Shown here: positions 8,275 through 56,070 of the stretch, piece by piece
Position numbering within the stretch: the first letter of the stretch is position 1
How the letters are laid out: the number at the start of each line of letters is the position of its first letter
Source: Eutreptiella sp. 'Long Island Sound 2002'
Lineage: Eukaryota > Protista > Euglenida
Direction of reading: 5' to 3'
NCBI GenBank assembly: GCA_964036045.1
Contig: OZ038378.1
Span: forward strand, 2,728,001-2,792,000
Length of the DNA stretch: 64,000 bases
Translations under genes and position numbers: made by a program
Notes under the pieces: generated by a model
Databases searched by the model: none
What the model saw: only the letters and a program-made list of their open reading frames with translations
What the model was told of the DNA's origin: nothing

Positions 8275-11200
8275 GGCCATTGCACTTGGGCCATTAACTT
8301 CAGCCATGCACTTGGGCCATTAACTTTAGCCATGCACTTGGGCCATGAACTTTAGCCATGCACTTGGGCCATTAACTTCAGCCATGCACTTGGGCCATTA
8401 ACTTCAGCCATGCACTTGGGCCATTAACTTTAGCCATGCACTTGGGCCATGAACTTTAGCCATGCACTTGGGCCATTAACTTTAGCCATGCACTTGGGCC
8501 ATTAACTTTAGCCATGCACTTGGGCCATGAACTTTAGCCATGCACTTGGGCCATTAACTTAAGCCATGCACTTGGGCCATTAACTTTAGCCATGCACTTG
8601 GGCCATGAACTTTAGCCATGCACTTGGGCCATGAACTTAAGCCATGCACTTGGGCCATTAACTTCAGCCATGCACTTGGGCCATTAACTTTAGCCATGCA
8701 CTTGGGCCATGAACTTAAGCCATGCACTTGGGCCATTAACTTAAGCCATGCACTTGGGCCATTAACTTTAGCCATGCACTTGGGCCATGAACTTTAGCCA
8801 TGCACTTGGGCCATGAACTTTAGCCATGCACTTGGGCCATTAACTTTAGCCATGCACTTGGGCCATGAACTTTAGCCATGCACTTGGGCCATGAACTTAA
8901 GCCATGCACTTGGGCCATTAACTTAAGCCATGCACTTGGGCCATTAACTTAAGCCATGCACTTGGGCCATGAACTTTAGCCATGCACTTGGGCCATTAAC
9001 TTTAGCCATGCACTTGGGCCATGAACTTAAGCCATGCACTTGGGCCATTAACTTAAGCCATGCACTTGGGCCATTAACTTTAGCCATGCACTTGGGCCAT
9101 GAACTTAAGCCATGCACTTGGGCCATTAACTTAAGCCATGCACTTGGGCCATTAACTTTAGCCATGCACTTGGGCCATGAACTTTAGCCATGCACTTGGG
9201 CCATGAACTTAAGCCATGCACTTGGGCCATTAACTTCAGCCATGCACTTGGGCCATTAACTTTAGCCATGCACTTGGGCCATGAACTTTAGCCATGCACT
9301 TGGGCCATTAACTTTAGCCATGCACTTGGGCCATGAACTTAAGCCATGCACTTGGGCCATTAACTTCAGCCATGCACTTGGGCCATTAACTTTAGCCATG
9401 CACTTGGGCCATTAACTTAAGCCATGCACTTGGGCCATTAACTTTAGCCATGCACTTGGGCCATGAACTTTAGCCATTTGCGTGGGCCATTAACTTAAGC
9501 CATGCACTTGGGCCATGAACTTAAGCCATGCACTTGGGCCATTAACTTAAGCCATGCACTTGGGCCATTAACTTAAGCCATGCACTTGGGCCATTAACTT
9601 AAGCCATGCACTTGGGCCATTAACTTAAGCCATGCACTTGGGCCATTAACTTAAGCCATGCACTTGGGCCATGAACTTTAGCCATGCACTTGGGCCATTA
9701 ACTTTAGCCATGCACTTGGGCCATTAACTTCAGCCATGCACTTGGGCCATTAACTTAAGCCATGCACTTGGGCCATTAACTTTAGCCATGCACTTGGGCC
9801 ATGAACTTTAGCCATTTGCGTGGGCCATTAACTTAAGCCATGCACTTGGGCCATGAACTTAAGCCATGCACTTGGGCCATTAACTTAAGCCATGCACTTG
9901 GGCCATTAACTTAAGCCATGCACTTGGGCCATTAACTTAAGCCATGCACTTGGGCCATTAACTTAAGCCATGCACTTGGGCCATTAACTTAAGCCATGCA
10001 CTTGGGCCATGAACTTTAGCCATTTGCGTGGGCTATTAACTTAAGCCATGCACTTGGGCCATGAACTTAAGCCATGCACTTGGGCCATTAACTTAAGCCA
10101 TGCACTTGGGCCATTAACTTAAGCCATTGCACTTGGGCCATTAACTTAAGCCATGCACTTGGGCCATGAACTTTAGCCATTTGCGTGGGCCATTAACTTA
10201 AGCCATGCACTTGGGCCATGAACTTAAGCCATGCACTTGGGCCATTAACTTAAGCCATGCACTTGGGCCATTAACTTAAGCCATGCACTTGGGCCATTAA
10301 CTTAAGCCATGCACTTGGGCCATTAACTTAAGCCATGCACTTGGGCCATTAACTTAAGCCATGCACTTGGGCCATTAACTTTAGCCATGCACTTGGGCCA
10401 TTAACTTCAGCCATGCACTTGGGCCATGAACTTTAGCCATGCACTTGGGCCATGAACTTAAGCCATGCACTTGGGCCATTAACTTAAGCCATGCACTTGG
10501 GCCATTAACTTTAGCCATGCACTTGGGCCATTAACTTTAGCCATGCACTTGGGCCATTAACTTCAGCCATGCACTTGGGCCATTAACTTCAGCCATGCAC
10601 TTGGGCCATGAACTTTAGCCATGCACTTGGGCCATGAACTTTAGCCATTTGCGTGGGCCATTAACTTAAGCCATGCACTTGGGCCATGAACTTAAGCCAT
10701 GCACTTGGGCCATTAACTTAAGCCATGCACTTGGGCCATTAACTTCAGCCATGCACTTGGGCCATTAACTTAAGCCATGCACTTGGGCCATTAACTTTAG
10801 CCATGCACTTGGGCCATTAACTTTAGCCATGCACTTGGGCCATTAACTTAAGCCATGCACTTGGGCCATTAACTTTAGCCATGCACTTGGGCCATTAACT
10901 TTAGCCATGCACTTGGGCCATTAACTTCAGCCATGCACTTGGGCCATTAACTTCAGCCATGCACTTGGGCCATGAACTTTAGCCATGCACTTGGGCCATG
11001 AACTTAAGCCATGCACTTGGGCCATTAACTTCAGCCATGCACTTGGGCCATTAACTTAAGCCATGCACTTGGGCCATTAACTTTAGCCATGCACTTGGGC
11101 CATTAACTTCAGCCATGCACTTGGGCCATTAACTTCAGCCATGCATTTGGGCCATGAACTTTAGCCATGCACTTGGGCCATTAACTTAAGCCATGCACTT

Positions 11201-12930
11201 GGGCCATTAACTTCAGCCATGCACTTGGGCCATTAACTTTAGCCATGCACTTGGGCCATGAACTTTAGCCATGCACTTGGGCCATTAACTTTAGCCATGC
11301 ACTTGGGCCATGAACTTAAGCCATGCACTTGGGCCATTAACTTCAGCCATGCACTTGGGCCATTAACTTTAGCCATGCACTTGGGCCATTAACTTAAGCC
11401 ATGCACTTGGGCCATTAACTTAAGCCATGCACTTGGGCCATTAACTTCAGCCATGCACTTGGGCCATTAACTTTAGCCATGCACTTGGGCCATTAACTTA
11501 AGCCATGCACTTGGGCCATTAACTTAAGCCATGCACTTGGGCCATTAACTTAAGCCATGCACTTGGGCCATTAACTTAAGGCCAGTTATCTTACCTTAAT
11601 TTCAGGTTGGGCCATTAACTTTAGCCATTTGCGTGGGCCATGAACTTAAGCCATGCACTTGGGCCATTAACTTAAGCCATGCACTTGGGCCATTAACTTT
11701 AGCCATGCACTTGGGCCATTAACTTAAGCCATGCACTTGGGCCATTAACTTCAGCCATGCACTTGGGCCATTAACTTTAGCCATGCACTTGGGCCATTAA
11801 CTTAAGCCATGCACTTGGGCCATTAACTTAAGCCATGCACTTGGGCCATTAACTTCAGCCATGCACTTGGGCCATTAACTTTAGCCATGCACTTGGGCCA
11901 TTAACTTAAGCCATGCACTTGGGCCATTAACTTAAGCCATGCACTTGGGCCATTAACTTAAGCCATGCACTTGGGCCATTAACTTAAGGCCAGTTATCTT
12001 ACCTTAATTTCAGGTTGGGCCATTAACTTTAGCCATTTGCGTGGGCCATGAACTTAAGCCATGCACTTGGGCCATTAACTTAAGCCATGCACTTGGGCCA
12101 TTAACTTTAGCCATGCACTTGGGCCATTAACTTAAGCCATGCACTTGGGCCATTAACTTCAGCCATGCACTTGGGCCATTAACTTAAGCCATGCACTTGG
12201 GCCATTAACTTTAGCCATTTGCGTGGGCCATTAACTTAAGCCATGCACTTGGGCCATGAACTTAAGCCATGCACTTGGGCCATTAACTTCAGCCATGCAC
12301 TTGGGCCATTAACTTCAGCCATGCACTTGGGCCATTAACTTTAGCCATGCACTTGGGCCATGAACTTAAGCCATGCACTTGGGCCATTAACTTCAGCCAT
12401 GCACTTGGGCCATTAACTTCAGCCATGCACTTGGGCCATTAACTTAAGCCATGCACTTGGGCCATTAACTTAAGCCATGCACTTGGGCCATTAACTTAAG
12501 CCATGCACTTGGGCCATTAACTTAAGCCATGCACTTGGGCCATTAACTTAAGCCATGCACTTGGGCCATTAACTTAAGCCATGCACTTGGGCCATTAACT
12601 TAAGCCATGCACTTGGGCCATTAACTTAAGCCATGCACTTGGGCCATTAACTTAAGCCATGCACTTGGGCCATTAACTTAAGCCATGCACTTGGGCCATT
12701 AACTTTAGCCATGCACTTGGGCCATTAACTTAAGCCATGCACTTGGGCCATTAACTTAAGCCATGCACTTGGGCCATTAACTTAAGCCATGCACTTGGGC
12801 CATTAACTTAAGGCCAGTTATCTTACCTTAATTTCAGGTTGGGCCATTAAGCCAAGCCATGCATTTCGTCCTTAAAATTCAGCCATTCAACTGGGGCCAG
12901 TGAGGTTAGCCATTTACTTGGGCAATGAAA
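8275..12930 (+). repeat. 26-bp tandem satellite, consensus AGCCATGCACTTGGGCCAT(T/G)AACTT(T/A/C), ~175 copies
   Basis: Uninterrupted 26-nt period from ~8275 to ~12850, degenerating to 12930. Recurrent variant monomers and three 44-bp interrupted monomers at 11581, 11989 and 12813. Confidence 0.98.
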
Positions 12931-13518
12931 TCACCTCGAAGAGAGGTTGTTAGATCAAGCGCAGGCGCGGGCGTCATATACCCCCCTTTTTTGGGGTCAT
13001 TCGCGTAGCATACCCCAAGGCATGATATTGGATGTCCAACCCCTTGTAAAATCATTATTTTGCCCAATAAGACCATCCCCCAATGGATTTTTTTATTCTG
13101 AGGCCTCTATCCCCTAAAACTGGATATCACTTTTTTGGGGGGTGGGTGGGGGGGGGGTGTTGCGGGGGGGGGTCAAAAGTTTTTGCTGAGAAGGCTCCAA
13201 GCAGTGGGGAAGCAAACCGCTAACACACAACTGATGGTTGAATGGTAACACAGCAGACCGCAGGAATCATGGTCGGCGGTTCGAACCCAGGTCGGCCGCA
13301 AAGAGTGGCGGCGGCGGCGGCAGCATATGCCAGCTGCATTACCATTCGGCCACTACTTGAATATTAGAACAAAGGAGTCCCCACTGCTTGGGGCCGTGTC
13401 TGCCACTGACAAAAAACCCAAACTGTGTGTTTCTGTCTGACTGACTGCTGGCCTGGCTCAGGGACTGCTTGGCTGACTGTCAACCTCTCTTCGAGGTGCA
13501 CTGCTGAAGGCAATAGAA
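12931..13518 (+). mobile_element. Non-autonomous Helitron/Helentron-like element, short subfamily (588 bp)
   Basis: Starts TCACCTCGAAGAGAGGTTG. An 18-bp perfect inverted copy lies at 13481-13498, followed by a TGCT-GAA-GGCA hairpin and ATAGAA. The flanks GGGCAATGAAA and TTTAGGCACACACTTGG rejoin into one satellite monomer, with no TSD. Confidence 0.8.
13228..13300 (+). promoter_or_regulatory. tRNA-derived Pol III A/B-box cassette inside the element
   Basis: A box TGGTTGAATGG (13235-13245) and B box GGTTCGAACCC (13278-13288) at tRNA-like spacing (43 nt). A full cloverleaf is not evident. Confidence 0.65.
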
Positions 13519-13670
13519 TTTAGGCACACACTTGGTGCATCAACTTTCGCCATGCCCTTAGGACATGAACTTTAGCCGTGCACTTGGGCCATTAACTTTA
13601 GCCTTGCACTTGGGCCATGAACTTTAGCCATGCACTTGGGCCATGGACTTTACCCATGCACTTGGGCCGT
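13519..13670 (+). repeat. Continuation of the 26-bp satellite (degenerate) beyond the insertion
   Basis: About 5-6 diverged monomers of GCCATGCACTTGGGCCATGAACTTTA. Confidence 0.9.
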
Positions 13671-13672
13671 GC

Positions 13673-13958
13673 ATTGTATTGTACTTTCACCCAAGGCACC
13701 CCTAAAATTTTGAAGGTCATGAGAATTGCTAGGTGAACCACAAAGTTGGTGGACTGCCACAGTTGCGTTCACTGCAATTGACAGATTGTATCAGCGTCTA
13801 CGGTGGTCTATCATACCGCACTTTTGATGGGCTGGGTTAATGTTCCAAGAGATGTCCCCTTTCACCTACTCGTCTATATTGCATACCCGGGCATACACAT
13901 ATACACCACAATACATGAGAAATTTCAAAAAGATTTTGTACATCACGGATGGAGAGGG
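13673..13958 (+). repeat. Left arm of a ~290-bp long inverted repeat
   Basis: Reverse-complement match to 14958-15208 plus 25470-25504; the right arm is split by a 10.3-kb insertion. Confidence 0.85.
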
Positions 13959-14301
13959 AGGACATTCTTTGAGGATGGAGACCACCAACCGAAATCAAGG
14001 TCAAATCTTGGGGATTTGATGAGTTCTTTGAGAAATTCGGATCTTGTCTTGGCGTAGCCTGCAGTTGTTGTTGCGAAGGATTGTAAACAATTCGTCCAAA
14101 AGTGTCAGGGGTGGCAAGGATCGTGTCAGCTCTCGCAAAAATGGTATCTATCTGTGCCTTCAGGACTCTGTTGTGGTTCTTCGGGACAAGAAATCATCTG
14201 GGGCTCATGCTGTTGGAGTCCTATGGCCTCGGTCATTTTGTAGACCAAAAGGTGTTACACTATTCAGTCAACCTTGTGCACCCCGTTTGACTTGTGGGGT
14301 G

Positions 14302-14435
14302 GCTTAAGTTAATGGCCCAAGTGCATGGGCTAGGTTAATGCCCCAAGGGAATGGCTACAGTTCATGGCCGAAGTGCAGGGCTAATGTTAATGGCCCAAGT
14401 GCATGGTTTAATTTAATGGCCCAGGTGCATGGCCC
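14302..14435 (-). repeat. Inverted, diverged copies of the 26-bp satellite monomer
   Basis: TTAAGTTAATGGCCCAAGTGCATGG and four to five diverged neighbours are the reverse complement of the satellite unit. Confidence 0.85.
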
Positions 14436-14957
14436 CTGTGCAAGCTGCACAAGATTCCATTCAGAGACGTGGTGCGCGTGCCTGGTGGCATACACATCAG
14501 CAACTCAATCGGGGGATAGTGTACCATCTCTGTGGCTACGAACACTGTTCTGGCTCCTGGAGACCGGGATGGGGTATTGGATGCTACAAGGGGGTTGTAC
14601 CCGCGCTTTGGACAAGTATCGTCTGGGTGGAGACGAGAGGAGTGCTTGGAGTCCAGGTTTGTTGACACATGCACTCCAAGCCTGGTTGGGTGCAAAATTC
14701 ATGGCTCTGCCTCCTCCTCGCAAGCACCCCTATCACAAGCCGGAAAGGATGCAACGAAGGCAGTGTGAAGGTAGCTGAAGCCAGATCACGGGTCGAAACC
14801 CAAGCTTTTGTGACCCCCGAACCCCTACCCACGGCTCCATCTTGGAGATAGGCCCTAAAGAACCAAAAGAATAATGACTATGGTCACCACTAAAATTGGG
14901 TGATTCACAAATGGCGAATCATAGGATTCCCCGCTCGCCAACCGGTGCGGTACATTA

Positions 14958-15208
14958 CCCCCGTCCATCCTTGGTGTACAAAATCTTTTTAGGCTTTCTC
15001 ATGCATTGCGGTGTGTATGTGTATGCCCGGGTATGCAATATAGACGAGTAGGTGAAAGGGGACATCTCTCGGAACATTAACCCAGCCCATCAAAAGTGCG
15101 GTATGATAAGCCACTGTAGACGCTGATACAAATTGTCAATTGTAGTAAAGAAAATGTGGCAGTCCACCCACTTGGTGGTTCATTTGGCAATTCTCATGAC
15201 CTTCAAAA
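14958..15208 (-). repeat. Right arm (first part) of the long inverted repeat
   Basis: Reverse complement of ~13705-13958; resumes at 25470. Confidence 0.85.
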
Positions 15209-16769
15209 TCACCTCGAAGAGAGGTTGCGGGGTTGTTAGATCAAGCGCAGGCGCGAGCGTCGTATACCCCCCTTTTTTGGGGTCGTTCGCGTAGCATACC
15301 CCAATGTATGGTTTCTAACGTCTAACCCCCTGTAAAATCATCATTTTAGGACCAAAAATGATCCCCCAATGATTTTTTGGATTTTGACCCCCGTACCCCC
15401 CCGCACCGGGGTACCCTTTTTTGAGGGGGGGGGGTGGGGGGGGTGGGGGGGGGGTCAAAACTGCTTTGTGTATTGTGGCCGCTGTGTGTGTATTTGGACC
15501 TGGGTCCTGAAGAACTTTTTTCTTGTATATGGACCCTCTAACCCGTGGCGGGGGTCCCGGATCCCAACTCCAGGTACCCCCAGGCACCCCCCCCTATATG
15601 GCCCCTCGCCAATGAGGACTTAGCCGTTTTTCACGCTGGATAGGCTGTTTAGTGGCACGTGAAGGTTTTTTGAAATTCGAATTTTAGTGACTACCTTCCG
15701 TTGCCCCTGCGATTGGTTTGGGTGATCATTTGGTGACAATACGGGTACTTGAGCACCCATGGGGACCCACGTAGTGGCTGCTAGGCCTATGTAGCCCTTG
15801 CCATGGGCCCTCCGAAAGCCCCAAAATTGCTGTTGCGTAGGCTGTTTAGTGACACTTGAAAGTTTTTCACATTTCCACTTTTTCCGAAACCCTTCTGTTG
15901 CCCCTAGGATGGGTTTGGGTGATCATTTGGTGACAATGCGGGTGCTTGAGCACCCATGGGGGCCCACGTAGTGGCCACTGGGCCCATCTAGCCCGAACCA
16001 TGGGCCCCCCAAAAGCTTCAAATTGCTGTTTGTAGGTGGTTCAATGGTATTTGGTGTGTGCACAAACTGCTTTCCAGCACAACAAGCAGTTTTCCACCCT
16101 CTGCAGGTCAAAAATGGAAAATTTTTGCAAAATCACCTCGCAGAGGTTGTTAGATCAAAGCCAGGCAGGCGTATATATGGGAAAACGCCACATACCCCGC
16201 CATTTTGGCCTTTTTGGGCCTATTCGCGTACCCTACCCCAAGGGGTTGAATTGTTAGTTTAACCCCTTGTAAAATCATTATTTTGTCCAATAAACGCATC
16301 CCCCAATGAGTTTTTGGTCCGGACCCCCCCAGACCCCCCCCACTTGAAACCCACTTTTTTGAGGTTTTAAGGGAGGGGGGGGGATAGGGGGGGGTCAAAA
16401 ATGTCGAAAAAATGACCCCCCTTTGTTTGGGTCATTTTTTGGGTCGAAAATCATGAATCTTTTGGTTTTTTTCGATTTTGAGCCGAAAAAGTGTTTCCGG
16501 GTCCCGACTCCATAGGGTTTGTATGGGGCGGAGTGGGACGAGCGCAGTTTATGCATTTTTTGGCCATTTTTGCTATGTTGGCGATTTTGGCAACCTCGGT
16601 GACCCCGTGGTACCCACTCCAAGGGGTGCGAGTGGGGATGTTGTGACAGTATATGCCTCCTAGGATATGGAAGAACGTTTTTTGCACTCTGTAGCCTTGC
16701 CCAGGGCTGGTGAAATGCCTTGCCAAAGACGCGAAATGGCCGTTTCCACCAATAATGGCCTAGTGAATG

Positions 16770-18295
16770 GGCCAGTACACAACCTGCTCATGCAGTTTTT
16801 CACCTTGGGCAGCTCAAACATCGAAGTTTTTGAAACTTGTTTTTTGATATTGTGACCACCTAAAATGACCATCCAAGGTATATAAAGCATGTTTTAGACC
16901 GTATTTACGTGTTTCTCACCCTATTTGGGTATTAGGTCCGGGGGGGGGGGTCTCCCAAGGGATTGGTACACAACCTGCTTATGCAGTTTTTCAACCTCAG
17001 CAGCTTAAAAATCGAAGTTTTTGAAACTTGTTTTTTTGATATTGTGACCACCCAAAATGACCATCCAAGGTACGTAAAGCATGTTTTAGGCTGTATTTGC
17101 GTGTTTTTTCATCCTATTTGGGTATTAGGTGCGGGGGGGGGGTCTCCCAAGGGATTGGTACACAACCTGCTTATGCAGTTTTTCACCCTGGGCAGCTCAA
17201 AAATCGAAGTTTTCGAAACTTGTTTTTTTGATATTGTGACCACCCAAAATGACCATCCAAGGTACGTAAAGCATGTTTTAGGCCGTATTTACGTGTTTCT
17301 CACCCTATTTGGGTATTAGGTCCGGGGGGGGGGGTCTCCCAAGGGATTGGTACACAACCTGCTTATGCAGTTTTTCAACCTCGGCAGCTCAAAAATCGAA
17401 GTTTTCGAAACTTGTTTTTTTGATATTGTGACCACCCAAAATGACCATCCAAGCTATGTAAAGCATGTTTTAGGCCGTATTTACGTGTTTCTCACCCTAT
17501 TTGGGTATTAGGTCCGGGGGGGGGGGGTCTCCCAAGGGATTGGTACACAACCTGCTTATGCAGTTTTTCAACCTCGGCAGCTCAAAAATCGAAGTTTTCG
17601 AAACTTGTTTTTTTGATATTGTGACCACCCAAAATGACCATCCAAGGTACGTAAAGCATGTTTTAGGCTGTATTTGCGTGTTTTTTCATCCTATTTGGGT
17701 ATTAGGTGGGGGGGGGGGTCTCCCAAGGGATTGGTACACAACCTGCTTATGCAGTTTTTCAACCTCGGCAGCTCAAAAATCGAAGTTTTCGAAACTTGTT
17801 TTTTTGATATTGTGACCACCCAAAATGATCATCCAAGCTATGTAAAGCATGTTTTAGGCTGTATTTGCGTGTTTTTCATCCTATGTGGGTATTAGGTCCG
17901 GGGGGGGGGGGGGGGTCTCCCAAGGGATTGGTACACAACCTGCTTATGCAGTTTTTCACCCTGGGCAGCTCAAAAATCGAAGTTTTCGAAACTTGTTTTT
18001 TTGGTATTGTGACCACCCAAAATGACCATCCAAGGTATGTAAAGCATGTTTTAGGCCGTATGTACATGTTTTTCACCCTATTTGGGTATTAGTTCCGGGG
18101 GGTCGGGGGCTCCCAAGGGATTGGCACACAACCTTATGCAGTTTTCCACCCTGGGCAGCTCAAAAATCGAAGTTTTCGAAACTTGTTTTTTTGATACCGT
18201 GATCACCTAAAATGATCATCCAAGGTATGCAAAGCATGTTTTAGCCCGTATTTATGTAGTTTCCATCCTATTTTGGGTGTGTTTTGCTCGGGGTA
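16770..18295 (+). repeat. ~192-bp central tandem repeat, unit 1 (8 copies; 9, 6 and 4 copies in units 2-4)
   Basis: CCCAAGGGATTGG recurs at 16954, 17146, 17338, 17531, 17722, 17919 and 18112. Length differences are mostly in a poly-G tract. Confidence 0.95.
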
Positions 18296-18587
18296 GATTC
18301 TCTGCGAGGTGGACTTGCCGAAGGCAACAGAACCACCGCGCAGAGGTTGTTAGGTCAAAGCCAGGCAGGCGTATATATGGGGAAAACGCCACATACCCCC
18401 CCATTTTGGCCTTTTTGGGCCTATTCGCGTACCCTACCCCAAGGGGTTGAATTGTTAGTTTAACCCCTTGTAAAATCATTATTTTGTCCAATAAACGCAA
18501 CCCCCCATGAGTTTTTGGTCCGGACCCCCCTAGACCCCCCCCACTTGAAACCCACTTTTTTGAGGTTTTCAAGGAGGGGGGGGGGGT

Positions 18588-19270
18588 GGGTTGGGTTGGG
18601 TTGGGTTGGGTCAAGGCCTCGCCTGGTCGCCTACCCACGGTCCGCGCCGCCTTCCCTGCGGGACCCGACTGGGCGGCCGTACCCGGGTGTCCGGTCACAA
18701 GGCCTACCGGACTGTTGACCGCCCCCAGACCCCGCGGTGGCGCTCGCGGGCGGGAGATGCCGCCGTGCCTGTGTGTATGTGCCCTTGTGTGTCTGAGGGG
18801 GGGGGGGGGGGGGCTGTGGCACACCTGCTTGCTCCATTGTTGTTCGGCGTTGGCGCACATGGCGCGGGGAAGTGTGTGCCTGGTGCTCCAGGCCCCGGCA
18901 GGGAGGCTGGAGAGCCTGACGCTGAGCCCGCCGGGGGAGATGTGGGCCTGGGCTCGCAACCTCCACGTCACAAGGACATGCTACCCAACCACTCCACGAC
19001 TGCCTATTGGCACGGGAAGGCGGTGGTACGTGGCACGACTGGGGTCAGACCCGCACTCCTTGACTGCCTTAGGCACAGGTGGTGCTGCCTCGCGGGCTGG
19101 GTCCGGCTCCCACGGCCGAGGGCGTACCCTGGGCAGATGGAGGGGCACCAAGGCGCAGAGTGTGCTTCCCTGCCCTGGGTGCCACCAGTGCTGGCTGCAC
19201 TGGCTGCGGCGCTACAGCCCGCGTAGACGAGGGGGCCCAGAGGGCACCACACCCGAATGGCCTCTCCGTT
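18588..19270 (-). mobile_element. ~680-bp GC-rich insertion with (GGGTT)n end, probable retroposon fragment, in array unit 2 only
   Basis: Absent from units 1, 3 and 4. It sits in the G-run, flanked by G11-12TGGG on both sides (possible TSD), with a (AACCC)4 tail on the minus strand. Confidence 0.6.
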
Positions 19271-22200
19271 GGGGGGGGGGGGTGGGGGGGGGGTCAAAAA
19301 ATGACCCCCCTTTTTTTGGGTCGAAAATCATGAATCTTTTGGTTTTTTTCGATTTTGAGCCGAAAAAGTGTTTCCGGGTCCCGACTCCATAGGGTTTGTA
19401 TGGGGCGGAGTGGGACGAGCGCAGTTTATGCATTTTTTGGCCATTTTTGCTATGTTGGCGATTTTGGCAACCTCGGTGACCCCGTGGTACCCACTCCAAG
19501 GGGTGCGAGTGGGGATGTTGTGACAGTATATGCCTCCTAGGATATGGAAGAACGTTTTTGCACTCTGTAGCCTTGCCCAGGGCTGGTGAAATGCCTTGCC
19601 AAAGACGCGAAATGGCCGTTTCCACCAATAATGGCCTAGTGAATGGGCCAGTACACAACCTGCTCATGCAGTTTTTCACCTTGGGCAGCTCAAACATCGA
19701 AGTTTTTGAAACTTGTTTTTTTGATATTGTGACCACCTAAAATGACCATCCAAGGTATGTAAAGCATGTTTTAGGCCGTATTTACGTGTTTCTCACCCTA
19801 TTTGGGTATTAGGTCCGGGGGGGGGGGGTCTCCCAAGGGATTGGTACACAACCTGCTTATGCAGTTTTCAACCTCAGCAGCTTAAAAATCGAAGTTTTTG
19901 AAACTTGTTTTTTGATATTGTGACCACCCAAAATGACCATCCAAGGTACGTAAAGCATGTTTTAGGCTGTATTTGCGTGTTTTTTCATCCTATTTGGGTA
20001 TTAGGTGGGGGGGGGGGGTCTCCCAAGGGATTGGTACACAACCTGCTTATGCAGTTTTTCACCCTGGGCAGCTCAAAAATCGAAGTTTTCGAAACTTGTT
20101 TTTTTGATATTGTGACCACCCAAAATGACCATCCAAGGTACGTAAAGCATGTTTTAGGCCGTATTTACGTGTTTCTCACCCTATTTGGGTATTAGGTCCG
20201 GGGGGGGGGTCTCCCAAGGGATTGGTACACAACCTGCTTATGCAGTTTTTCAACCTCGGCAGCTCAAAAATCGAAGTTTTCGAAACTTGTTTTTTTGATA
20301 TTGTGACCACCCAAAATGACCATCCAAGCTATGTAAAGCATGTTTTAGGCCGTATTTACGTGTTTCTCACCCTATTTGGGTATTAGGTCCGGGGGGGGGG
20401 TCTCCCAAGGGATTGGTACACAACCTGCTTATGCAGTTTTTCAACCTCGGCAGCTCAAAAATCGAAGTTTTCGAAACTTGTTTTTTTGATATTGTGACCA
20501 CCCAAAATGACCATCCAAGCTATGTAAAGCATGTTTTAGGCCGTATTTACGTGTTTCTCACCCTATTTGGGTATTAGGTCCGGGGGGGGGGGTCTCCCAA
20601 GGGATTGGTACACAACCTGCTTATGCAGTTTTTCAACCTCGGCAGCTCAAAAATCGAAGTTTTCGAAACTTGTTTTTTTGATATTGTGACCACCCAAAAT
20701 GACCATCCAAGGTACGTAAAGCATGTTTTAGGCTGTATTTGCGTGTTTTTTCATCCTATTTGGGTATTAGGTGGGGGGGGGGGGTCTCCCAAGGGATTGG
20801 TACACAACCTGCTTATGCAGTTTTTCAACCTCGGCAGCTCAAAAATCGAAGTTTTCGAAACTTGTTTTTTTGATATTGTGACCACCCAAAATGATCATCC
20901 AAGCTATGTAAAGCATGTTTTAGGCTGTATTTGCGTGTTTTTCATCCTATGTGGGTATTAGGTCCGGGGGGGGGGGGGGGGTCTCCCAAGGGATTGGTAC
21001 ACAACCTGCTTATGCAGTTTTTCACCCTGGGCAGCTCAAAAATCGAAGTTTTCGAAACTTGTTTTTTTGGTATTGTGACCACCCAAAATGACCATCCAAG
21101 CTATGTAAAGCATGTTTTAGGCCGTACGTACATGTTTTTCACCCTATTTGGGTATTAGTTCCGGGGGGTCGGGGGCTCCCAAGGGATTGGCACACAACCT
21201 TATGCAGTTTTCCACCCTGGGCAGCTCAAAAATCGAAGTTTTCGAAACTTGTTTTTTTGATACCGTGATCACCTAAAATGATCATCCAAGGTATGCAAAG
21301 CATGTTTTAGCCCGTATTTATGTAGTTTCCATCCTATTTTGGGTGTGTTTTGCTCGGGGTAGATTCTCTGCGAGGTGGACTTGCCGAAGGCAACAGAACC
21401 ACCGCGCAGAGGTTGTTAGGTCAAAGCCAGGCAGGCGTATATATGGGGAAAACGCCACATACCCCCCCATTTTGGCCTTTTTGGGCCTATTCGCGTACCC
21501 TACCCCAAGGGGTTGAATTGTTAGTTTAACCCCTTGTAAAATCATTATTTTGTCCAATAAACGCAACCCCCCATGAGTTTTTGGTCCGGACCCCCCTAGA
21601 CCCCCCCCACTTGAAACCCACTTTTTTGAGGTTTTCAAGGAGGGGGGGGGGGTGGGGGGGGGTCAAAAAATGACCCCCCTTTTTTTGGGTCGAAAATCAT
21701 GAATCTTTTGGTTTTTTTCGATTTTGAGCCGAAAAAGTGTTTCCGGGTCCCGACTCCATAGGGTTTGTATGGGGCGGAGTGGGACGAGCGCAGTTTATGC
21801 ATTTTTTGGCCATTTTTGCTATGTTGGCGATTTTGGCAACCTCGGTGACCCCGTGGTACCCACTCCAAGGGGTGCGAGTGGGGATGTTGTGACAGTATAT
21901 GCCTCCTAGGATATGGAAGAACGTTTTTTGCACTCTGTAGCCTTGCCTAGGGCTGGTGAAATGCCTTGCCAAAGACGCGAAATGGCTGTTTCCACCAATA
22001 ATGGCCTAGTGAATGGGCCAGTACACAACCTGCTCATGCAGTTTTTCACCTTGGGCAGCTCAAACATCGAAGTTTTTGAAACTTGTTTTTTTGATATTGT
22101 GACCACCTAAAATGACCATCCAAGGTATGTAAAGCATGTTTTAGACCGTATTTACGTGTTTCTCACCCTATTTGGGTATTAGGTCCGGGGGGGGGGGTCT

Positions 22201-24600
22201 CCCAAGGGATTGGTACACAACCTGCTTATGCAGCTTTTCACCTTGGACAGCTCAAAAATCGAAGTTTTCGAAACCTGTTTTTTTTGATATTGTCATCACG
22301 TAAAATGACCATCCAAGCTATGTAAAGCATGTTTTAGGCTGTATTTACCTGTTTTTCACCTTATTTGGGTATTGGGTTGGGGGGGGGGTCTCCCAAGGGA
22401 TTGGTACACAACCTGCTTGTGCAGTTTTTCAACCTCAGCAGCTTAAAAATCGAAGTTTTTGAAACTTGTTTTTTTGATATTGTGACCACCCAAAATGACC
22501 ATCCAAGGTACGTAAAGCATGTTTTAGGCTGTATTTGCGTGTTTTTTCATCCTATTTGGGTATTAGGTGGGGGGGGGGGTCTCCCAAGGGATTGGTACAC
22601 AACCTGCTTATGCAGTTTTTCAACCTCAGCAGCTCAAAAATCGAAGTTTTCGAAACTTGTTTTTTTGATATTGTGACCACCCAAAATGACCATCCAAGGT
22701 ACGTAAAGCATGTTTTAGGCTGTATTTGCGTGTTTTTCATCCTATGTGGGTATTAGGTCCGGGGGGGGGGGTCTCCCAAGGGATTGGTACACAACCTGCT
22801 TATGCAGTTTTTCACCCTGGGCAGCTCAAAAATCGAAGTTTTCGAAACTTGTTTTTTTGGTATTGTGACCACCCAAAATGACCATCCAAGGTATGTAAAG
22901 CATGTTTTAGGCCGTATGTACATGTTTTTCACCCTATTTGGGTATTAGTTCCGGGGGGTCGGGGGCTCCCAAGGGATTGGCACACAACCTTATGCAGTTT
23001 TCCACCCTGGGCAGCTCAAAAATCGAAGTTTTCGAAACTTGTTTTTTTGATACCGTGATCACCTAAAATGATCATCCAAGGTATGCAAAGCATGTTTTAG
23101 CCCGTATTTATGTAGTTTCCATCCTATTTTGGGTGTGTTTTGCTCGGGGTAGATTCTCTGCGAGGTGGACTTGCCGAAGGCAACAGAACCACCGCGCAGA
23201 GGTTGTTAGGTCAAAGCCAGGCAGGCGTATATATGGGGAAAACGCCACATACCCCCCCATTTTGGCCTTTTTGGGCCTATTCGCGTACCCTACCCCAAGG
23301 GGTTGAATTGTTAGTTTAACCCCTTGTAAAATCATTATTTTGTCCAATAAACGCAACCCCCCATGAGTTTTTGGTCCGGACCCCCCTAGACCCCCCCCCA
23401 CTTGAAACCCACTTTTTTGAGGTTTTCAAGGAGGGGGGGGGGTCCGGGGGGGTCAAAAAATGACCCCTCCTTTTTTTGGGTCGAAAATCATGAATCTTTT
23501 GGTTTTTTTCGATTTTGAGCCGAAAAAGTGTTTCCGGGTCCCGACTCCATAGGGTTTGTATGGGGCGGAGTGGGACGAGCGCAGTTTATGCATTTTTTGG
23601 CCATTTTTGCTATGTTGGCGATTTTGGCAACCTCGGTGACCCCGTGGTACCCACTCCAAGGGGTGCGAGTGGGGATGTTGTGACAGTATATGCCTCCTAG
23701 GATATGGAAGAACGTTTTTTGCACTCTGTAGCCTTGCCCAGGGCTGGTGAAATGCCTTGCCAAAGACGCGAAATGGCTGTTTCCACCAATAATGGCCTAG
23801 TGAATGGGCCAGTACACAACCTGCTCATGCAGTTTTTCACCTTGGACAGCTCAAAAATCGAAGTTTTCGAAACTTGTTTTTTTTGATATTGTCATCACGT
23901 AAAATGACCATCCAAGCTATGTAAAGCATGTTTTAGGCCGTATTTACCTGTTTTTCACCTTATTTGGGTATTGGGTTGGGGGGGGGGTCTCCCAAGGGAT
24001 TGGTACACAACCTGCTTATGCAGTTTTTCAACCTCAGCAGCTTAAAAATCGAAGTTTTTGAAACTTGTTTTTTTGATATTGTGACCACCCAAAATGACCA
24101 TCCAAGGTACGTAAAGCATGTTTTAGGCTGTATTTGCGTGTTTTTTCATCCTATTTGGGTATTAGGGGGGGGGGGGGTCTCCCAAGGGATTGGTACACAA
24201 CCTGCTTATGCAGTCTTTCAACCTCGGCAGCTCAAAAATCGAAGTTTTCGAAACTTGTTTTTTTGATATTGTGACCACCCAAAATGATCATCCAAGCTAT
24301 GTAAAGCATGTTTTAGGCTGTATTTGCGTGTTTTTCATCCTATGTGGGTATTAGGTCCGGGGGGGGGGGGGGGTCTCCCAAGGGATTGGTACACAACCTG
24401 CTTATGCAGTTTTTCACTCTGGACAGCTCAAAAATCGAAGTTTTCGAACGTTGTTTTTTTGATATTGCGATCACCTAAAATGATCATCCAAGGTATGTAA
24501 AGCATGTTTTAGGCCGTATTCGCGTGTTTTTCACCCTATTTTTGGTTTGTGTTGCTCGGGGTAGATTCTCTGTGAGGTGGACTTGCCGAAGGCAATAGAA

Positions 24601-25437
24601 TTTTTTTTTTGATATTGTGACCACTTACAATGATGAAATATGCTATGTAAAGCATGTTTTAGACCCTCTTTGTGCGTTTTTCACCCTATTTGGCTGTGTG
24701 TGTGGGGGGGGGGGGGGGTACCAAGGGGTCTAGGGCACACAACCTGCTTATGCAGTTTTCAGGCCTCGGCAACTCAAAAATAGAAATTTCCGAAACTGAT
24801 TTTTTTGATACTTTGACCATCCAAAATGATCAAATATCCTATGTAAAGCATGTTTTGGACCCTGTTCATGTGTTTTTCACCCTATTTGGGTGTGGCGGGG
24901 GGGGGGGGGGTACCAAGGGGTCTAGGGCACACAACCTGCTTATGCAGTTTTCAGGCCTCGGCAGCTCAAAAATGGAAATTTCCGAAACTGATTTTTTTGA
25001 TACTTTGACCATCCAAAATGATCAAATATCCTATGTAAAGCATGTTTTGGACCCTCTTCGTGTGTTTTTCACCCTATTTGGGTGTGGGGGGGGGGGAGTA
25101 CCAAGGGGTCTAGGGCACACAGCCTGCTTACGCAGTTTTCAGGCCTCGGCAACTCAAAAATAGAAATTTCCGAAACTGATTTTTTTGATACTTTGACCAT
25201 CCAAAATGATCAAATATCCTATGTAAAGCATGTTTTGGACCCTCTTCGTGTGTTTTTCACCCTATTTGGGTGTGGCGGGGGGGGGAGTACCAAGGGGTCT
25301 AGGGCACACAACCTGCTTATGCAGTTTTTAGGCCTCGGCAACTCAAAAATAGAAATTTCCGAAACTGATTTTTTTGATACTTTGACCATCCAAAATGATC
25401 AAATATCCTATGTAAAGCATGTTTTGGCCCCTCTCCC
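24601..25437 (+). repeat. ~190-bp tandem repeat of the outer element (older homologous variant)
   Basis: CCAAGGGGTCTAGGGCAC recurs at ~24721, 24913, 25101 and 25290, and shares CACAACCTGCTTATGCAGTTTT...GTAAAGCATGTTTT with the 192-bp unit. Confidence 0.9.
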
Positions 25438-26529
25438 CTCTTCGAGGTGCCTTGCCGAAGGCAATAGAATTTTAGGGGTGCCTTGGGTGAAAGTACAATA
25501 CAATTGTTTGGATGTCTTGTCCAGTAAACAAGTCATTCTTCACCCATGAGGTCGCAACAAAGAACCACCAAACAACTACTGGGAGTGTTATGCCACAATG
25601 ACTTCTGAGAGTACTGCGTTGTGGTGTGCTGAAGTCCATCACAGTGCTGCAAGCCAACACACACAAAGCTCATTAGAGACCTGTGAGCACACCTTGATCA
25701 CCCCACATGAAACATGACCCCGTTTTTGGTACACCCGCCTTGTTGCCATCCATCCATCGGTGTAGCAAAACACAAGCATGTCTCCGTAGACACCCATAAC
25801 CAAGAACTACGGACCCACCTAGAAACAATGAAGGTAGTAGGCGGTCCATCGTGTGATGCAAGGTGGAGGTTTTGTACCCCATTTGTTCCCACTACAGACC
25901 AAGCAACGCAAGACACAAGCTTAGGGTATGATTCCCTACACCAATGAATACCTCGGCAACAGCCAACGGCTGTGGACTGAATTTCGGTGCATGTGTGTAG
26001 CGTGGTGGGGCACTTGTCTTTGCCTTATAGCCTAGCCGTATGCAGTGCAATGGCCTTGTACAACATTCTCATCTATGAGGCCCATTACACACGGACCATT
26101 TGACAATGGTCCGTGTGCTATGCGCAACCATTTCAGACTTGCCCACTGGAAGTAAACATATGTGACGGCAGTGCAAGCTGCCATAATTGCATTTTTTTTT
26201 GTGCATCGATATGCTTCTTTTTTCAATGGCACATGTCGATATGATGGGTGTAGCAATGTTGTGAGTGTGAGGAATGTACCTACTTTCAGAAGTTCATGCA
26301 ACTGAACAAAATGTGCACAATGCCAACCATTGCAACGTGGGTATTGGGGATGGCAAATCATTTTTGATACACCACCAGCATTCTTGCATACCTTACCATA
26401 CCCTCAAAGGTGTGTGTGTAAGCAATGTGGGTAAGCAACCCGGTCCATCTTGGGCAAAGAATGGCTCTTTTTGGCATAAATGGCGCAGATTTGAAAACTT
26501 GGATTTAGCAAGGGCACCACCTACCGCCT

Positions 26530-40900: not shown

Positions 40901-41859
40901 ATGTCGACACTTGCGTGGAACTAGTCTTTTTCAAGAAAAATCAATTTCAATATCCCATTTTTCATGGTCATGTTTTTGTATACATTTTAGTTCAAATTGT
41001 CGTGTCAATTCAACGGTAACATGTGTTGATGATCCAACGTAACATGTGGTGATGATCCGACGACCCTGTCACTTCACAGCTTCTGTGTGCTCTTGCTTCA
41101 CAATTTGTGCCCCCCCCCCCCCCCTCCCTCCTTCCCTAGAGAAGCACCCCAAGTAGACCAGAGTAGACCGCAAACCCTCCCTACAAAGCGCGTTGCATAA
41201 GGTGGAATCGGTGATTTCGGTGTTAACACATGTCAGTTCTCTTGTGCCAAACAAACAGTATTATCCCCACAAGTGTGGGTGTCAATACATTCAGCACAAT
41301 AATTCTCTTTGCACTCACCACAAACTGTGATGGTGGAGCGCTTTTGACAACACAAAGCACACCCGTTTGCCTCATCCTCTCCCTAATCTTGCGTGGCAGC
41401 TGAGTTGCTTTTATCAATCCAAAATTGCTTACGGCCCTTCAAAGCTGTATTCTTTCTTCCAATGAAGGGATGAATCCATATGAATCCATATCCCCAACTC
41501 GAGGGGCCACACAAATTTGTTCATTGTTAGTCCATATCGCCAGCTGAAGGGGCCACAGAAATCACCTCGAAGAGAGGTTGTTAGATCAAGCGCAGGCGCG
41601 GGCGTCCTATACCCCCCTTTTTTGGGGTCATTCGCGTAGCATACCCCAAGGCATGATATTGGATGTCCAACCCCTTGTAAAATCATTATTTTGCCCAATA
41701 AGACCATCCCCCAATGGTTTTTTGATTGTGAGGCCTCTATCCCCTAAAACTGGATATCACTTTTTTGGGGTGTGGGGGTGTGGGGGGGGGGTGTGGGGGG
41801 GGGGTCAAAAGTTTTTGCTGAGAAGGCTCTAAGCAGTGGGGAAGCAAACCGCTAACACA

Positions 41860-41936
41860 CAACTGATGGTTGAATGGTAACACAGCAGACCGCAGGAATC
41901 AAGGTCGGCGGTTCGAATCCTGGGCGGCCATTTTTT
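41860..41936 (+). promoter_or_regulatory. tRNA-like A/B-box cassette followed by a T6 Pol III terminator
   Basis: A box 41867-41877, B box GGTTCGAATCC 41910-41920, TTTTTT at 41931-41936. Confidence 0.65.
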
Positions 41937-41965
41937 GCGGCGGCGGCGGTGGCGGCGGCGGCATA

Positions 41966-42038
41966 TTTACTGTACCGGGGTTCGAACCGCCGACCAAAAA
42001 GTCAACAGGTAGCTGCATTACCATTCGGCCACTGCTTC
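41966..42038 (-). pseudogene. tRNA-Asn-like degenerate cassette, convergent with the plus-strand cassette
   Basis: The minus strand reads GTGGCCGAATGGTAATGCAGCTAC-CTGTTGA-CTTTTTGGTCGGCGGTTCGAACCCC: A box, a CT-GTT-GA anticodon-like loop and a B box. The anticodon stem does not pair. Confidence 0.55.
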
Positions 42039-42699
42039 AATACCAGGACATTAGAGTCCCCAGTGCTTGGGTTCGTGTCTGCCACTGACAAAAAACCCAG
42101 ACTGTGTGTTTCTGTCTGACTGACTGCTGGCCTGGCTCAAGGACTGCTTGGCTGACTGTCAACCTCTCTTCGAGGTGCACTGCCGAAGGCAATAGAATTT
42201 GTCGATGATGAGTCCCCAACTCAAGGGACCATACAAATTTATGGATTATGAGTCCATATCCCCAACTCAAGGGGCCACCCAATTTGTGGATTGTTTGGCG
42301 TACATACGGGGTGAGGCAACACAAGGAGGGAGTTGAAAATGGTCATGGGTGGCGAATGGGTCCAAAAAGATGCCCGACGCTAACACTCCCCCCAAGGCTT
42401 GTCTAGTCTCCGAGGCTTGCCCTTTCCCTAAACAACTCATATAGTGCAGACAAAAATACCATGTTCCATGGACATCCGCCAAAGAACTATGGCAGCAAGA
42501 GTATTCGGATCATGCACCCACTCAGCCATGTGCTCCAAAGAATATCCAAAGCCCCAACCGGACTGGAAAGGCAAGCATGAAATGGGATTTGCAGCACCCC
42601 CTTCAAAATGATACAGAAGCAAAATGGCAATTGGACCAGGCTCCGCATCTAGGGAATGTGCAAAATTTCGGGAGAGGGTGCATCTCTTTTGCGTGGACA

Positions 42700-55726: not shown

Positions 55727-56070
55727 TCACCTTGAAGAGAGGTTGTTAGATCAAGCGTAGGCGTGAGCATCGTATACCCCCCCTTTTTGGGGGTCGTTCG
55801 TGTAGCATACCCCAATGTATGGTTTCTGACGTCCAACCCCTTTGAAAATCATCATTTTAGGACCAAAAATGATCCCCCAATGATTTTTTTGGATTTTGAC
55901 CCCCGTACCCCCCTGCACCTGGGTACCACTTTTTTGGGGGGCGGGGGGGTTCAAAACTTCTTTGCGTATTGTGGCCGCTGTGTGTGCATTTGGACCTACG
56001 TCCTAAAGAACTTTTTTCTTGTATATGGACCCCCTAACCCATGGCGGGGGTCCCGGGTCTCAACTCTAGG
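55727..56070 (+). mobile_element. 3'-truncated copy of the Helitron/Helentron-like family
   Basis: GAAAAA|TCACCTTGAAGAGAGGTTGTTAGATCAAGC; colinear with 15209-15590 for ~340 bp, with no 3' hairpin found. Confidence 0.8.

Follow-up and report, generated by a model that had tools for sequence, protein, structure and literature searches.

The window analyzed here is a 64,000-nucleotide stretch of contig OZ038378.1 (positions 2,728,001-2,792,000) in the 2.28-Gb genome assembly of the euglenid Eutreptiella sp. 'Long Island Sound 2002'. It contains a head-to-tail array of four putative Helitron2/Helentron-style mobile elements, which lies inside a further member of the same family. We searched the window with motifs derived from both ends of the elements. 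The 5' motif, CACCNCGCAGAGGTTGTTAG, was found at 16134, 18334, 21400 and 23190 (0.03 matches are expected by chance), and the 3' motif, which comprises a subterminal repeat and a hairpin, ends at 18327, 21393, 23183 and 24595 (chance expectation 0). These positions bear out to the base the proposal of an initial annotation, made from the sequence of the window, that units of 2200, 3066, 1790 and 1412 bp follow one another, end to start, without a spacer. The coordinates of the units and of the surrounding features are collected in Table 1.

All three inner joints have the same sequence, GGCAACAGAA followed directly by CCACCGCGCAGAG, while the outermost ends of the array are standard, with TCACCTCGCAGAG on the 5' side and GGCAATAGAA on the 3' side. 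The initial annotation had described the same difference (CAGAA and CCACCG at the inner junctions, standard ends outside), and the sequence agrees with it. The standard joint reads ATAGAA-T-CACCTCGCAGAG in nearly all of the genome-wide matches listed.

Table 1. Features of the array locus, in window coordinates.
Feature	Position	Strand	Description
Inverted repeat, left arm	13673..13953	-	Empty site AAAA^TTTT between 13707 and 13708
Inverted repeat, right arm upstream of the outer element	14964..15208	+	Resumes at 25470-25504
Outer element, left part	15209..16132	+	5' end TCACCTCGAAGAGAGG ('A-type' subfamily); 197-bp repeat (x2) in the head; ends with the first 73 nt of the first 190-bp monomer
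Unit 1	16133..18332	+	2200 bp; standard 5' end TCACCTCGCAGAG; variant 3' end CAACAGAA; first ~300 bp are an edge segment unlike the inner heads; monomers A B C D E F G H
3' terminal module of unit 1	18300..18332	+	Subterminal repeat CTCTGCGAGGTG (18300-18311), hairpin (18315-18327), 5 terminal nt
Inner joint 1	18323..18345	+	Between 18332 and 18333; GGCAACAGAA joined to CCACCGCGCAGAG
Unit 2	18333..21398	+	3066 bp; variant 5' end CCACCGCG; monomers A B C D D E F G H
Foreign insertion	18588..19284		697 bp, GC-rich; in unit 2 only, within a poly-G tract
Inner joint 2	between 21398 and 21399	+	Identical to inner joint 1
Unit 3	21399..23188	+	1790 bp; variant 5' end; monomers A X B (B/F hybrid) G H
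Inner joint 3	between 23188 and 23189	+	Identical to inner joint 1
Unit 4	23189..24600	+	1412 bp; variant 5' end; monomers (A/X hybrid) B F H'
Last monomer and 3' end of unit 4			Edge segment CTCTGTGAGGTG ... GGCAATAGAA, unlike the inner tails
Outer element, right part	24601..25469	+	Remainder of the interrupted monomer, then four monomers
Outer element, 3' module	within 24601..25469	+	CCTCTTCGAGGTG-CCTTGCCGAAGGCAA-TAGAA

A genome-wide search for the variant junction, which the initial annotation had proposed, was carried out, and the joint with all three variants was retrieved from these three places only. Other joint matches are at least two mismatches away, and none of them carries more than one of the three variants. 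With a 449-bp probe that spans joint 3, the three local copies matched at 100% identity, and the next best match was at 97% (best 40 of 3529 candidates scored). The 655-bp segments that span each of the three joints differ pairwise by 0, 2 and 2 substitutions.

The uniformity of the interior does not extend to the edges of the array. The heads of the units were aligned by MAFFT after removal of the 697-bp insert from unit 2. The head of unit 1 differs from those of units 2-4 by 11 substitutions and 2 indels, all located in the first 300 bp, and positions 303-644 are the same in all four units except for three sites. Within the initial 240 bp, the inner heads show 0.0% divergence from one another and 3.8-4.2% from unit 1; this first-to-inner distance (~4%) equals the median distance between heads from different loci (4.2%). 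At the other edge, the last 207 bp are identical in units 1-3 and differ by 22-27 substitutions (11-13%) in unit 4. The remaining homologous pieces of the units are 99-100% identical, and the identity within the interior of the array is 99.7-100%.

A map of the internal monomers based on informative sites gave a matching picture. Unit 2 equals unit 1 with one extra D monomer; the X monomer is common only to units 3 and 4; a B/F hybrid is present in unit 3, and unit 4 starts with an A/X hybrid. Site 609 of the head is C, C, T and T in units 1 to 4. A uniform interior, divergent edges, hybrid monomers and one duplicated D, the features looked for in an array grown by unequal exchange, are thus all found here. 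We therefore conclude, with a probability of roughly 75%, that the three inner joints descend from one joint that was amplified locally by unequal recombination. Since the outer ends lack the variants and the edges are unlike the interior, the joint already lay in the chromosome at the time of its mutation, and its copying came later.

The initial annotation had offered two origins for the array, a circle that contained the junction or a single junction later amplified by unequal crossover. The second is retained on the strength of the unique joint, the uniform interior with divergent edges and the hybrid monomers; the first is not, since the outer ends are standard and the units differ in length and monomer content. 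A junction present only at this locus, with units related by simple local duplication, had been named there as an outcome that would speak against the proposal; this is what was found for the variant joint, while the generic joint is very common genome-wide.

The growth of the array can be pictured as follows. An old head-to-tail pair of elements would have resided inside a monomer of an older relative, and the single joint of this founding pair would have gained three substitutions in place. Recent unequal homologous exchange (or an equivalent slipped replication) between misaligned units, in register with the 191-bp monomers and the 5' heads, would then have copied the joint-bearing interior and expanded the pair to four units, so that the interior became uniform and both edges of the array were left untouched. 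With the founding pair denoted P-Q, a first crossover in the B-to-F monomer region would yield P-U3-Q, and a second one, in the head between positions 300 and 609, would produce U2. Further small changes would include duplication of the D monomer, the A/X fusion and a late insertion of the 697-bp foreign sequence in unit 2. We infer the exchange mechanism and the order of events from these patterns, and the two-step path is one sufficient route to the order of the units.

Several points weigh against this account. The number of units is taken from the assembly alone. Units 1 and 4 are 4-13% different at their edges, yet their bodies agree at more than 99.5%; a simple history of two steps is therefore insufficient, and additional exchange or gene conversion near both edges would be needed. 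The differences between edge and interior are additive with respect to the family consensus (3 + 8 in the heads and 10 + 17 in the tails), and such additivity is as compatible with an old identical pair as with two independent elements. Finally, unequal crossover is indistinguishable here from replication slippage or break-induced copying.

The three joint variants (18328-18338, 21394-21404 and 23184-23194) are substitutions that lie within 12 bp of the joint, in terminal bases where recognition by a transposase would be expected. Their density, 3 in 26 bp at the joint compared with 8 in 240 bp of the adjoining head, is elevated (Poisson p ~0.02). This excess may be due to chance, most joints in the genome being unmutated.

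To place the locus in its genomic context, the generic joint pattern was searched for with one mismatch allowed. The search returned 1333 head-to-tail joints (682 + 651), and the reversed control returned 0 and 1. Tail-to-tail joints were found at three sites and head-to-head joints at two, so that the head-to-tail orientation prevails by more than 400 to 1. The array's subfamily has 4530 exact 5' ends, and 1085 of these are preceded by AGAA-T (~24%, an upper estimate that may include a few flanks matching by chance). On the contig that contains the window (C1), 63 joints among the matches listed fall into 32 places, 19 of which have a single joint, and the arrays contain up to seven. The array described here is a typical one, an ordinary example among many, and since the generic head-to-tail joint is so common, its arrangement is not an oddity of the assembly.

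Other arrays behave similarly. At locus L050 the inner heads are 0% apart and the first head is 2.5% away from them; L046 has three identical inner heads. In the sampled arrays, nested insertions are repeated within the array, with higher-order periods of 3.2-3.7 kb, which argues that local amplification is common and that some arrays grew after nesting had taken place. At one locus (L048, C1:1763000-1772999), the higher-order repeat of ~3.2 kb comprises one solo element, a spacer of 194 bp and two elements joined head to tail; thus, segmental tandem duplication also carries whole elements.

The best surviving alternative, quite improbable in our estimate, is that the four units came in a single arrival, either as a rolling-circle concatemer or from a joint-bearing circle, and became different only through later decay. 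The joints are indeed precise to the base (3' end, one T or C, 5' end), as they are in Helitron circles and tandem arrays (PMC5876387, PMC5148889), and the preponderance of head-to-tail over inverted joints (1333 versus 3 and 2) would be expected of concatemers. However, a single template should place the same bases at every boundary, and the outer ends carry none of the three variants. The divergence of the first 300 bp and the last 207 bp (4% and 11-13%) against the near-identity of the interior, the unequal lengths and monomer contents of the units, hybrids included, and the lack of any other genomic copy of the variant lineage all speak against joint arrival.

It is very improbable that the array, or the founding pair, was built by successive integrations at the terminus of a resident element with little local amplification. 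Joints between different subfamilies (~105 + 5, see below), short elements that abut long ones with differing flanks (L020-L022), the likeness of the AGAA^TTT boundary to the preferred target and the occurrence of only three tail-to-tail joints would all agree with integration of this kind. Three independent events would not, however, share three private substitutions and 655-bp flanks with 0-2 differences, so successive integration explains at most the first joint. Comparably improbable is that the number of units is an artefact of assembly, with near-identical 2-3-kb repeats over- or under-collapsed: an interior identity of 99.7-100% is the very situation in which assemblers err, and variable poly-G run lengths hint at homopolymer noise, but the unit-specific structures (the extra D, the 697-bp insert, X and the hybrids) are not created by spurious duplication, the 8.5-kb block fits within one long read, and there are 1333 occurrences of the generic joint on the contigs of the genome.

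Local amplification of one joint, the reading that we prefer, leaves the question of how first joints form. Here, joints between different subfamilies are informative. In 108 joints, the 5' end of the array's subfamily is preceded by the 3' module CTTCGAGGTG of a different subfamily, whose hairpin is CACTGCC or CCTTGCC; ~105 of these joints remain once three point variants are removed. In 28 joints the 5' end is of the other type; its 3' partner belongs to the array's subfamily in 5 of them and to the same other type in 23. Heterotypic joints thus number about 110 in total, and they did not come from a concatemer of one element. At L020-L022, a complete element of 544-627 bp abuts a long element, and the upstream flanks are different in each case.

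The 3' boundary, AGAA^TTT, resembles the usual insertion target. Insertion into this sequence in random orientation was considered as a source of joints and was ruled out by the counts of the three orientations: a symmetric target would yield tail-to-tail joints in equal number, and there are only three, which suggests that integration is directed by the terminus of the resident element. Instability of palindromes could account for a deficit of tail-to-tail joints, but this explanation fails for pairs from different subfamilies, whose 3' ends have only ~35 bp in common. We tentatively suggest, as one possibility that we consider somewhat less probable than its negation, that the transposase may use a resident 3' terminus as an integration site and join the incoming 5' end to it, generating one-directional chains. 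If so, joints formed at resident termini would seed arrays that are later grown by unequal exchange, a second route besides rolling-circle concatemers.

For the first joint of the array locus itself, an origin by integration precisely at a resident element's end has a little below an even chance. Rolling-circle read-through or a concatemer is a lesser though sizeable possibility, and recombination of a circle with a resident copy is unlikely. A test of whether units 1 and 2 are sisters was uninformative, the differences being additive, the edge and interior ends sharing no derived sites and the family being star-like. The relative age of the founders, judged by 13 versus 25 derived sites in head plus tail, is only suggestive (one-sided p ~0.04). 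Dating of the founding pair through the surrounding inverted repeat was also considered; the arms are 9.5% diverged and too old to bound anything.

The array lies within an outer element (15209-25469) that belongs to a sister subfamily of the array units. The initial annotation had placed the 8.5-kb block at an AAAA^TTTT site in a monomer of an older family member. This proved correct: when the flanks of the array, gcaaaa^tttttttttt, are joined, one collinear monomer of the outer element is restored. The same annotation had the outer element split one arm of an inverted repeat. With the element excised, the arms were 90.5% identical over 283 bp by blastn, and the alignment crosses the excision point, so the outer element does interrupt the right arm. 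The empty site in the left arm equals the filled site base for base. Since the uninterrupted AAAA^TTTT is kept in the other arm, it can be concluded that no target-site duplication accompanied insertion of the outer element.

Other repeats are found near the inverted repeat. A 26-bp satellite (175 copies at 93% match) occupies positions 8276-12812, and its remnants at 13540-13660 and 14300-14440 flank the inverted repeat in opposite orientations. A short element of the family (12931-13518) is located at the edge of this satellite.

The 697-bp insert of unit 2 begins with short repeats of the TGGGT type. At least 40 full-length copies with about 100% identity are present on many contigs (2644 first-look candidates). 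By these properties, the insert is a very young and very abundant mobile element of another kind. Its insertion postdates the expansion of the array.

The ends of the array units have a defined organization. The 12 nucleotides that follow the first base, CACCTCGCAGAG (16134-16145), are exactly complementary to the subterminal repeat CTCTGCGAGGTG (18300-18311), which sits directly upstream of the hairpin TTGCC-GAA-GGCAA. The hairpin has a 5-bp stem and is followed by 5 nt up to the terminus of the element. Its predicted folding energy, -3.4 kcal/mol, is no better than that of shuffled sequence, and support for the hairpin comes from its position, which is conserved across subfamilies. In the outer subfamily, the 5' CGAAGAG has its counterpart in CTCTTCG on the 3' side, and the two form a compensatory pair. 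Since the 5' end pairs with a subterminal 3' repeat, the units have the asymmetric, subterminal inverted repeats of Helitron2/Helentron elements. The middle of the element is an array of 190-197-bp monomers (a 191-bp internal satellite).

At the loci inspected, the flanks of insertions are always ..AA^TT(T)... The first base of the element is T and its last two bases are A, so that both A^T and T^T are possible readings of the cut. The 5' TC and the A/T insertion site of canonical Helitrons are both found, TCACC.. lying between ..AAAA and TTTT.. with the cut ambiguous by 1-2 bases. The 3' end of canonical Helitrons (Helitron1), CTRR with a hairpin 10-12 nt upstream, was considered and rejected, since the end here is ..GGCAATAGAA and the hairpin is 5 nt from the terminus. 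Based on the 5' TC, the 12-nt complementarity between the 5' and 3' ends, the predicted 3' hairpin, the lack of a target-site duplication, insertion at AAA^TTT and the internal 191-bp satellite, we classify the array units as putative non-autonomous Helitron2/Helentron-style (HINE-like) elements.

Among the open reading frames of the array in the window, no transposase-like frame was found, and long frames are present only in the GC-rich foreign insert. A scan of the window against Rfam matched no family. Genome-wide, there are at least 150 matches to Helitron_like_N (Rep) (863 candidates), many of them in open frames of 1400-2600 amino acids, and the scores of these matches form at least three classes (about 204, 188 and 92 bits). 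The end motifs of the family are absent from eight 3.5-kb Rep loci (L001-L008); thus, no autonomous partner is linked to the family by its termini there.

All family insertions in the window (12931-13518, 15209-25469, 41562-42197 and 55727) are on the plus strand. In ten sampled array loci (L043-L052), nearly every nested or abutting element is oriented as its host, with one reverse 5' end (L047:608). The shared orientation may reflect strand-specific integration, with counts inflated by local duplication. Recurrent insertion spots are present inside family members (L050:2795 and 6448; L051:4083 and 7260; L045:4780 and 5673); one of them is located in the head at a depth of ~326-341 bp (..tcatgaa^t..); others are in monomers (..ttcgaaa^ and ..atggaaa^). 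At 55727, the 5' end TCACCTTGAAGAGAGG of the short/outer subfamily follows agaaaaa, and no matching 3' module is present downstream in the window; the copy is possibly truncated or decayed.

Tandem head-to-tail arrays of Helitrons have been described in bat, Drosophila, rice and maize, among them arrays of Helitron-1_DPe on the Y chromosome of D. pseudoobscura, and they are commonly read as footprints of rolling-circle transposition (PMC5876387, PMC5148889, bioRxiv 10.1101/2021.06.02.446622). In the last of these studies, joints were likewise detected with an end-to-start query. Our literature search yielded no paper that treats Helitrons of Euglena in substance. As in the known arrays, whole elements at the present locus are joined 3' to 5' end without a spacer. 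The locus differs in that growth from one to three joints is traced to local unequal exchange and not to transposition, and in the genome as a whole about a quarter of the 5' ends of the subfamily are joined. Tandem arrays of Helitrons usually serve as evidence of rolling-circle concatemers. The array described here is a counter-example, its joint copies being identical by descent and made locally after mutation; since a mutated joint was copied locally, an array alone is no proof of a concatemer. The ~1300 precise joints and ~110 heterotypic joints of this genome constitute an unusually large natural data set on the origin of first joints.

HINE/DINE-1 Helentrons and Helitron2 elements of Drosophila, mite, oyster and Fusarium (FoHeli) possess subterminal or asymmetric terminal inverted repeats and a short 3' stem-loop; they insert at T-rich sites without a clear target-site duplication, and central tandem repeats can make up half of the element (PMC4067079, PMC7492417, PMC5148889). 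Such internal repeats are typical of elements derived from Helentrons (PMC4067079, PMC7492417). The units described here share the subterminal repeats, the lack of a target-site duplication and the central repeats, and they have a predicted 3' stem-loop and apparently T-rich insertion sites. They differ in that the hairpin, only 5 bp long and 5 nt away from the end, does not stand out energetically, and in that the insertion point is readable as either A^T or T^T. Circles of the bacterial IS91 are cited in PMC5148889. IS91/ISCR elements, rolling-circle insertion sequences that show one-ended transposition and tandem multimers, have an HUH-type mechanism, which the present family may share, along with terminator-like hairpin ends, circles and tandem copies; unlike the array units, they are bacterial and protein-coding.

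The array also has much in common with satellite DNA. In satellites and other tandem arrays, unequal crossover leads to a homogeneous interior with divergent edge units, which is textbook concerted evolution. The same uniform interior, divergent edges and hybrids at exchange points are seen here, but the repeat unit is a complete mobile element that has a 191-bp satellite nested within it, and exchange takes place with two periods, one of 191 bp and the other of about 1.4-3 kb. The array thus shows how larger tandem repeats are seeded by mobile elements that contain satellites. Tandem Helitron arrays were already known, and the array described here adds to them a member whose local growth can be traced.

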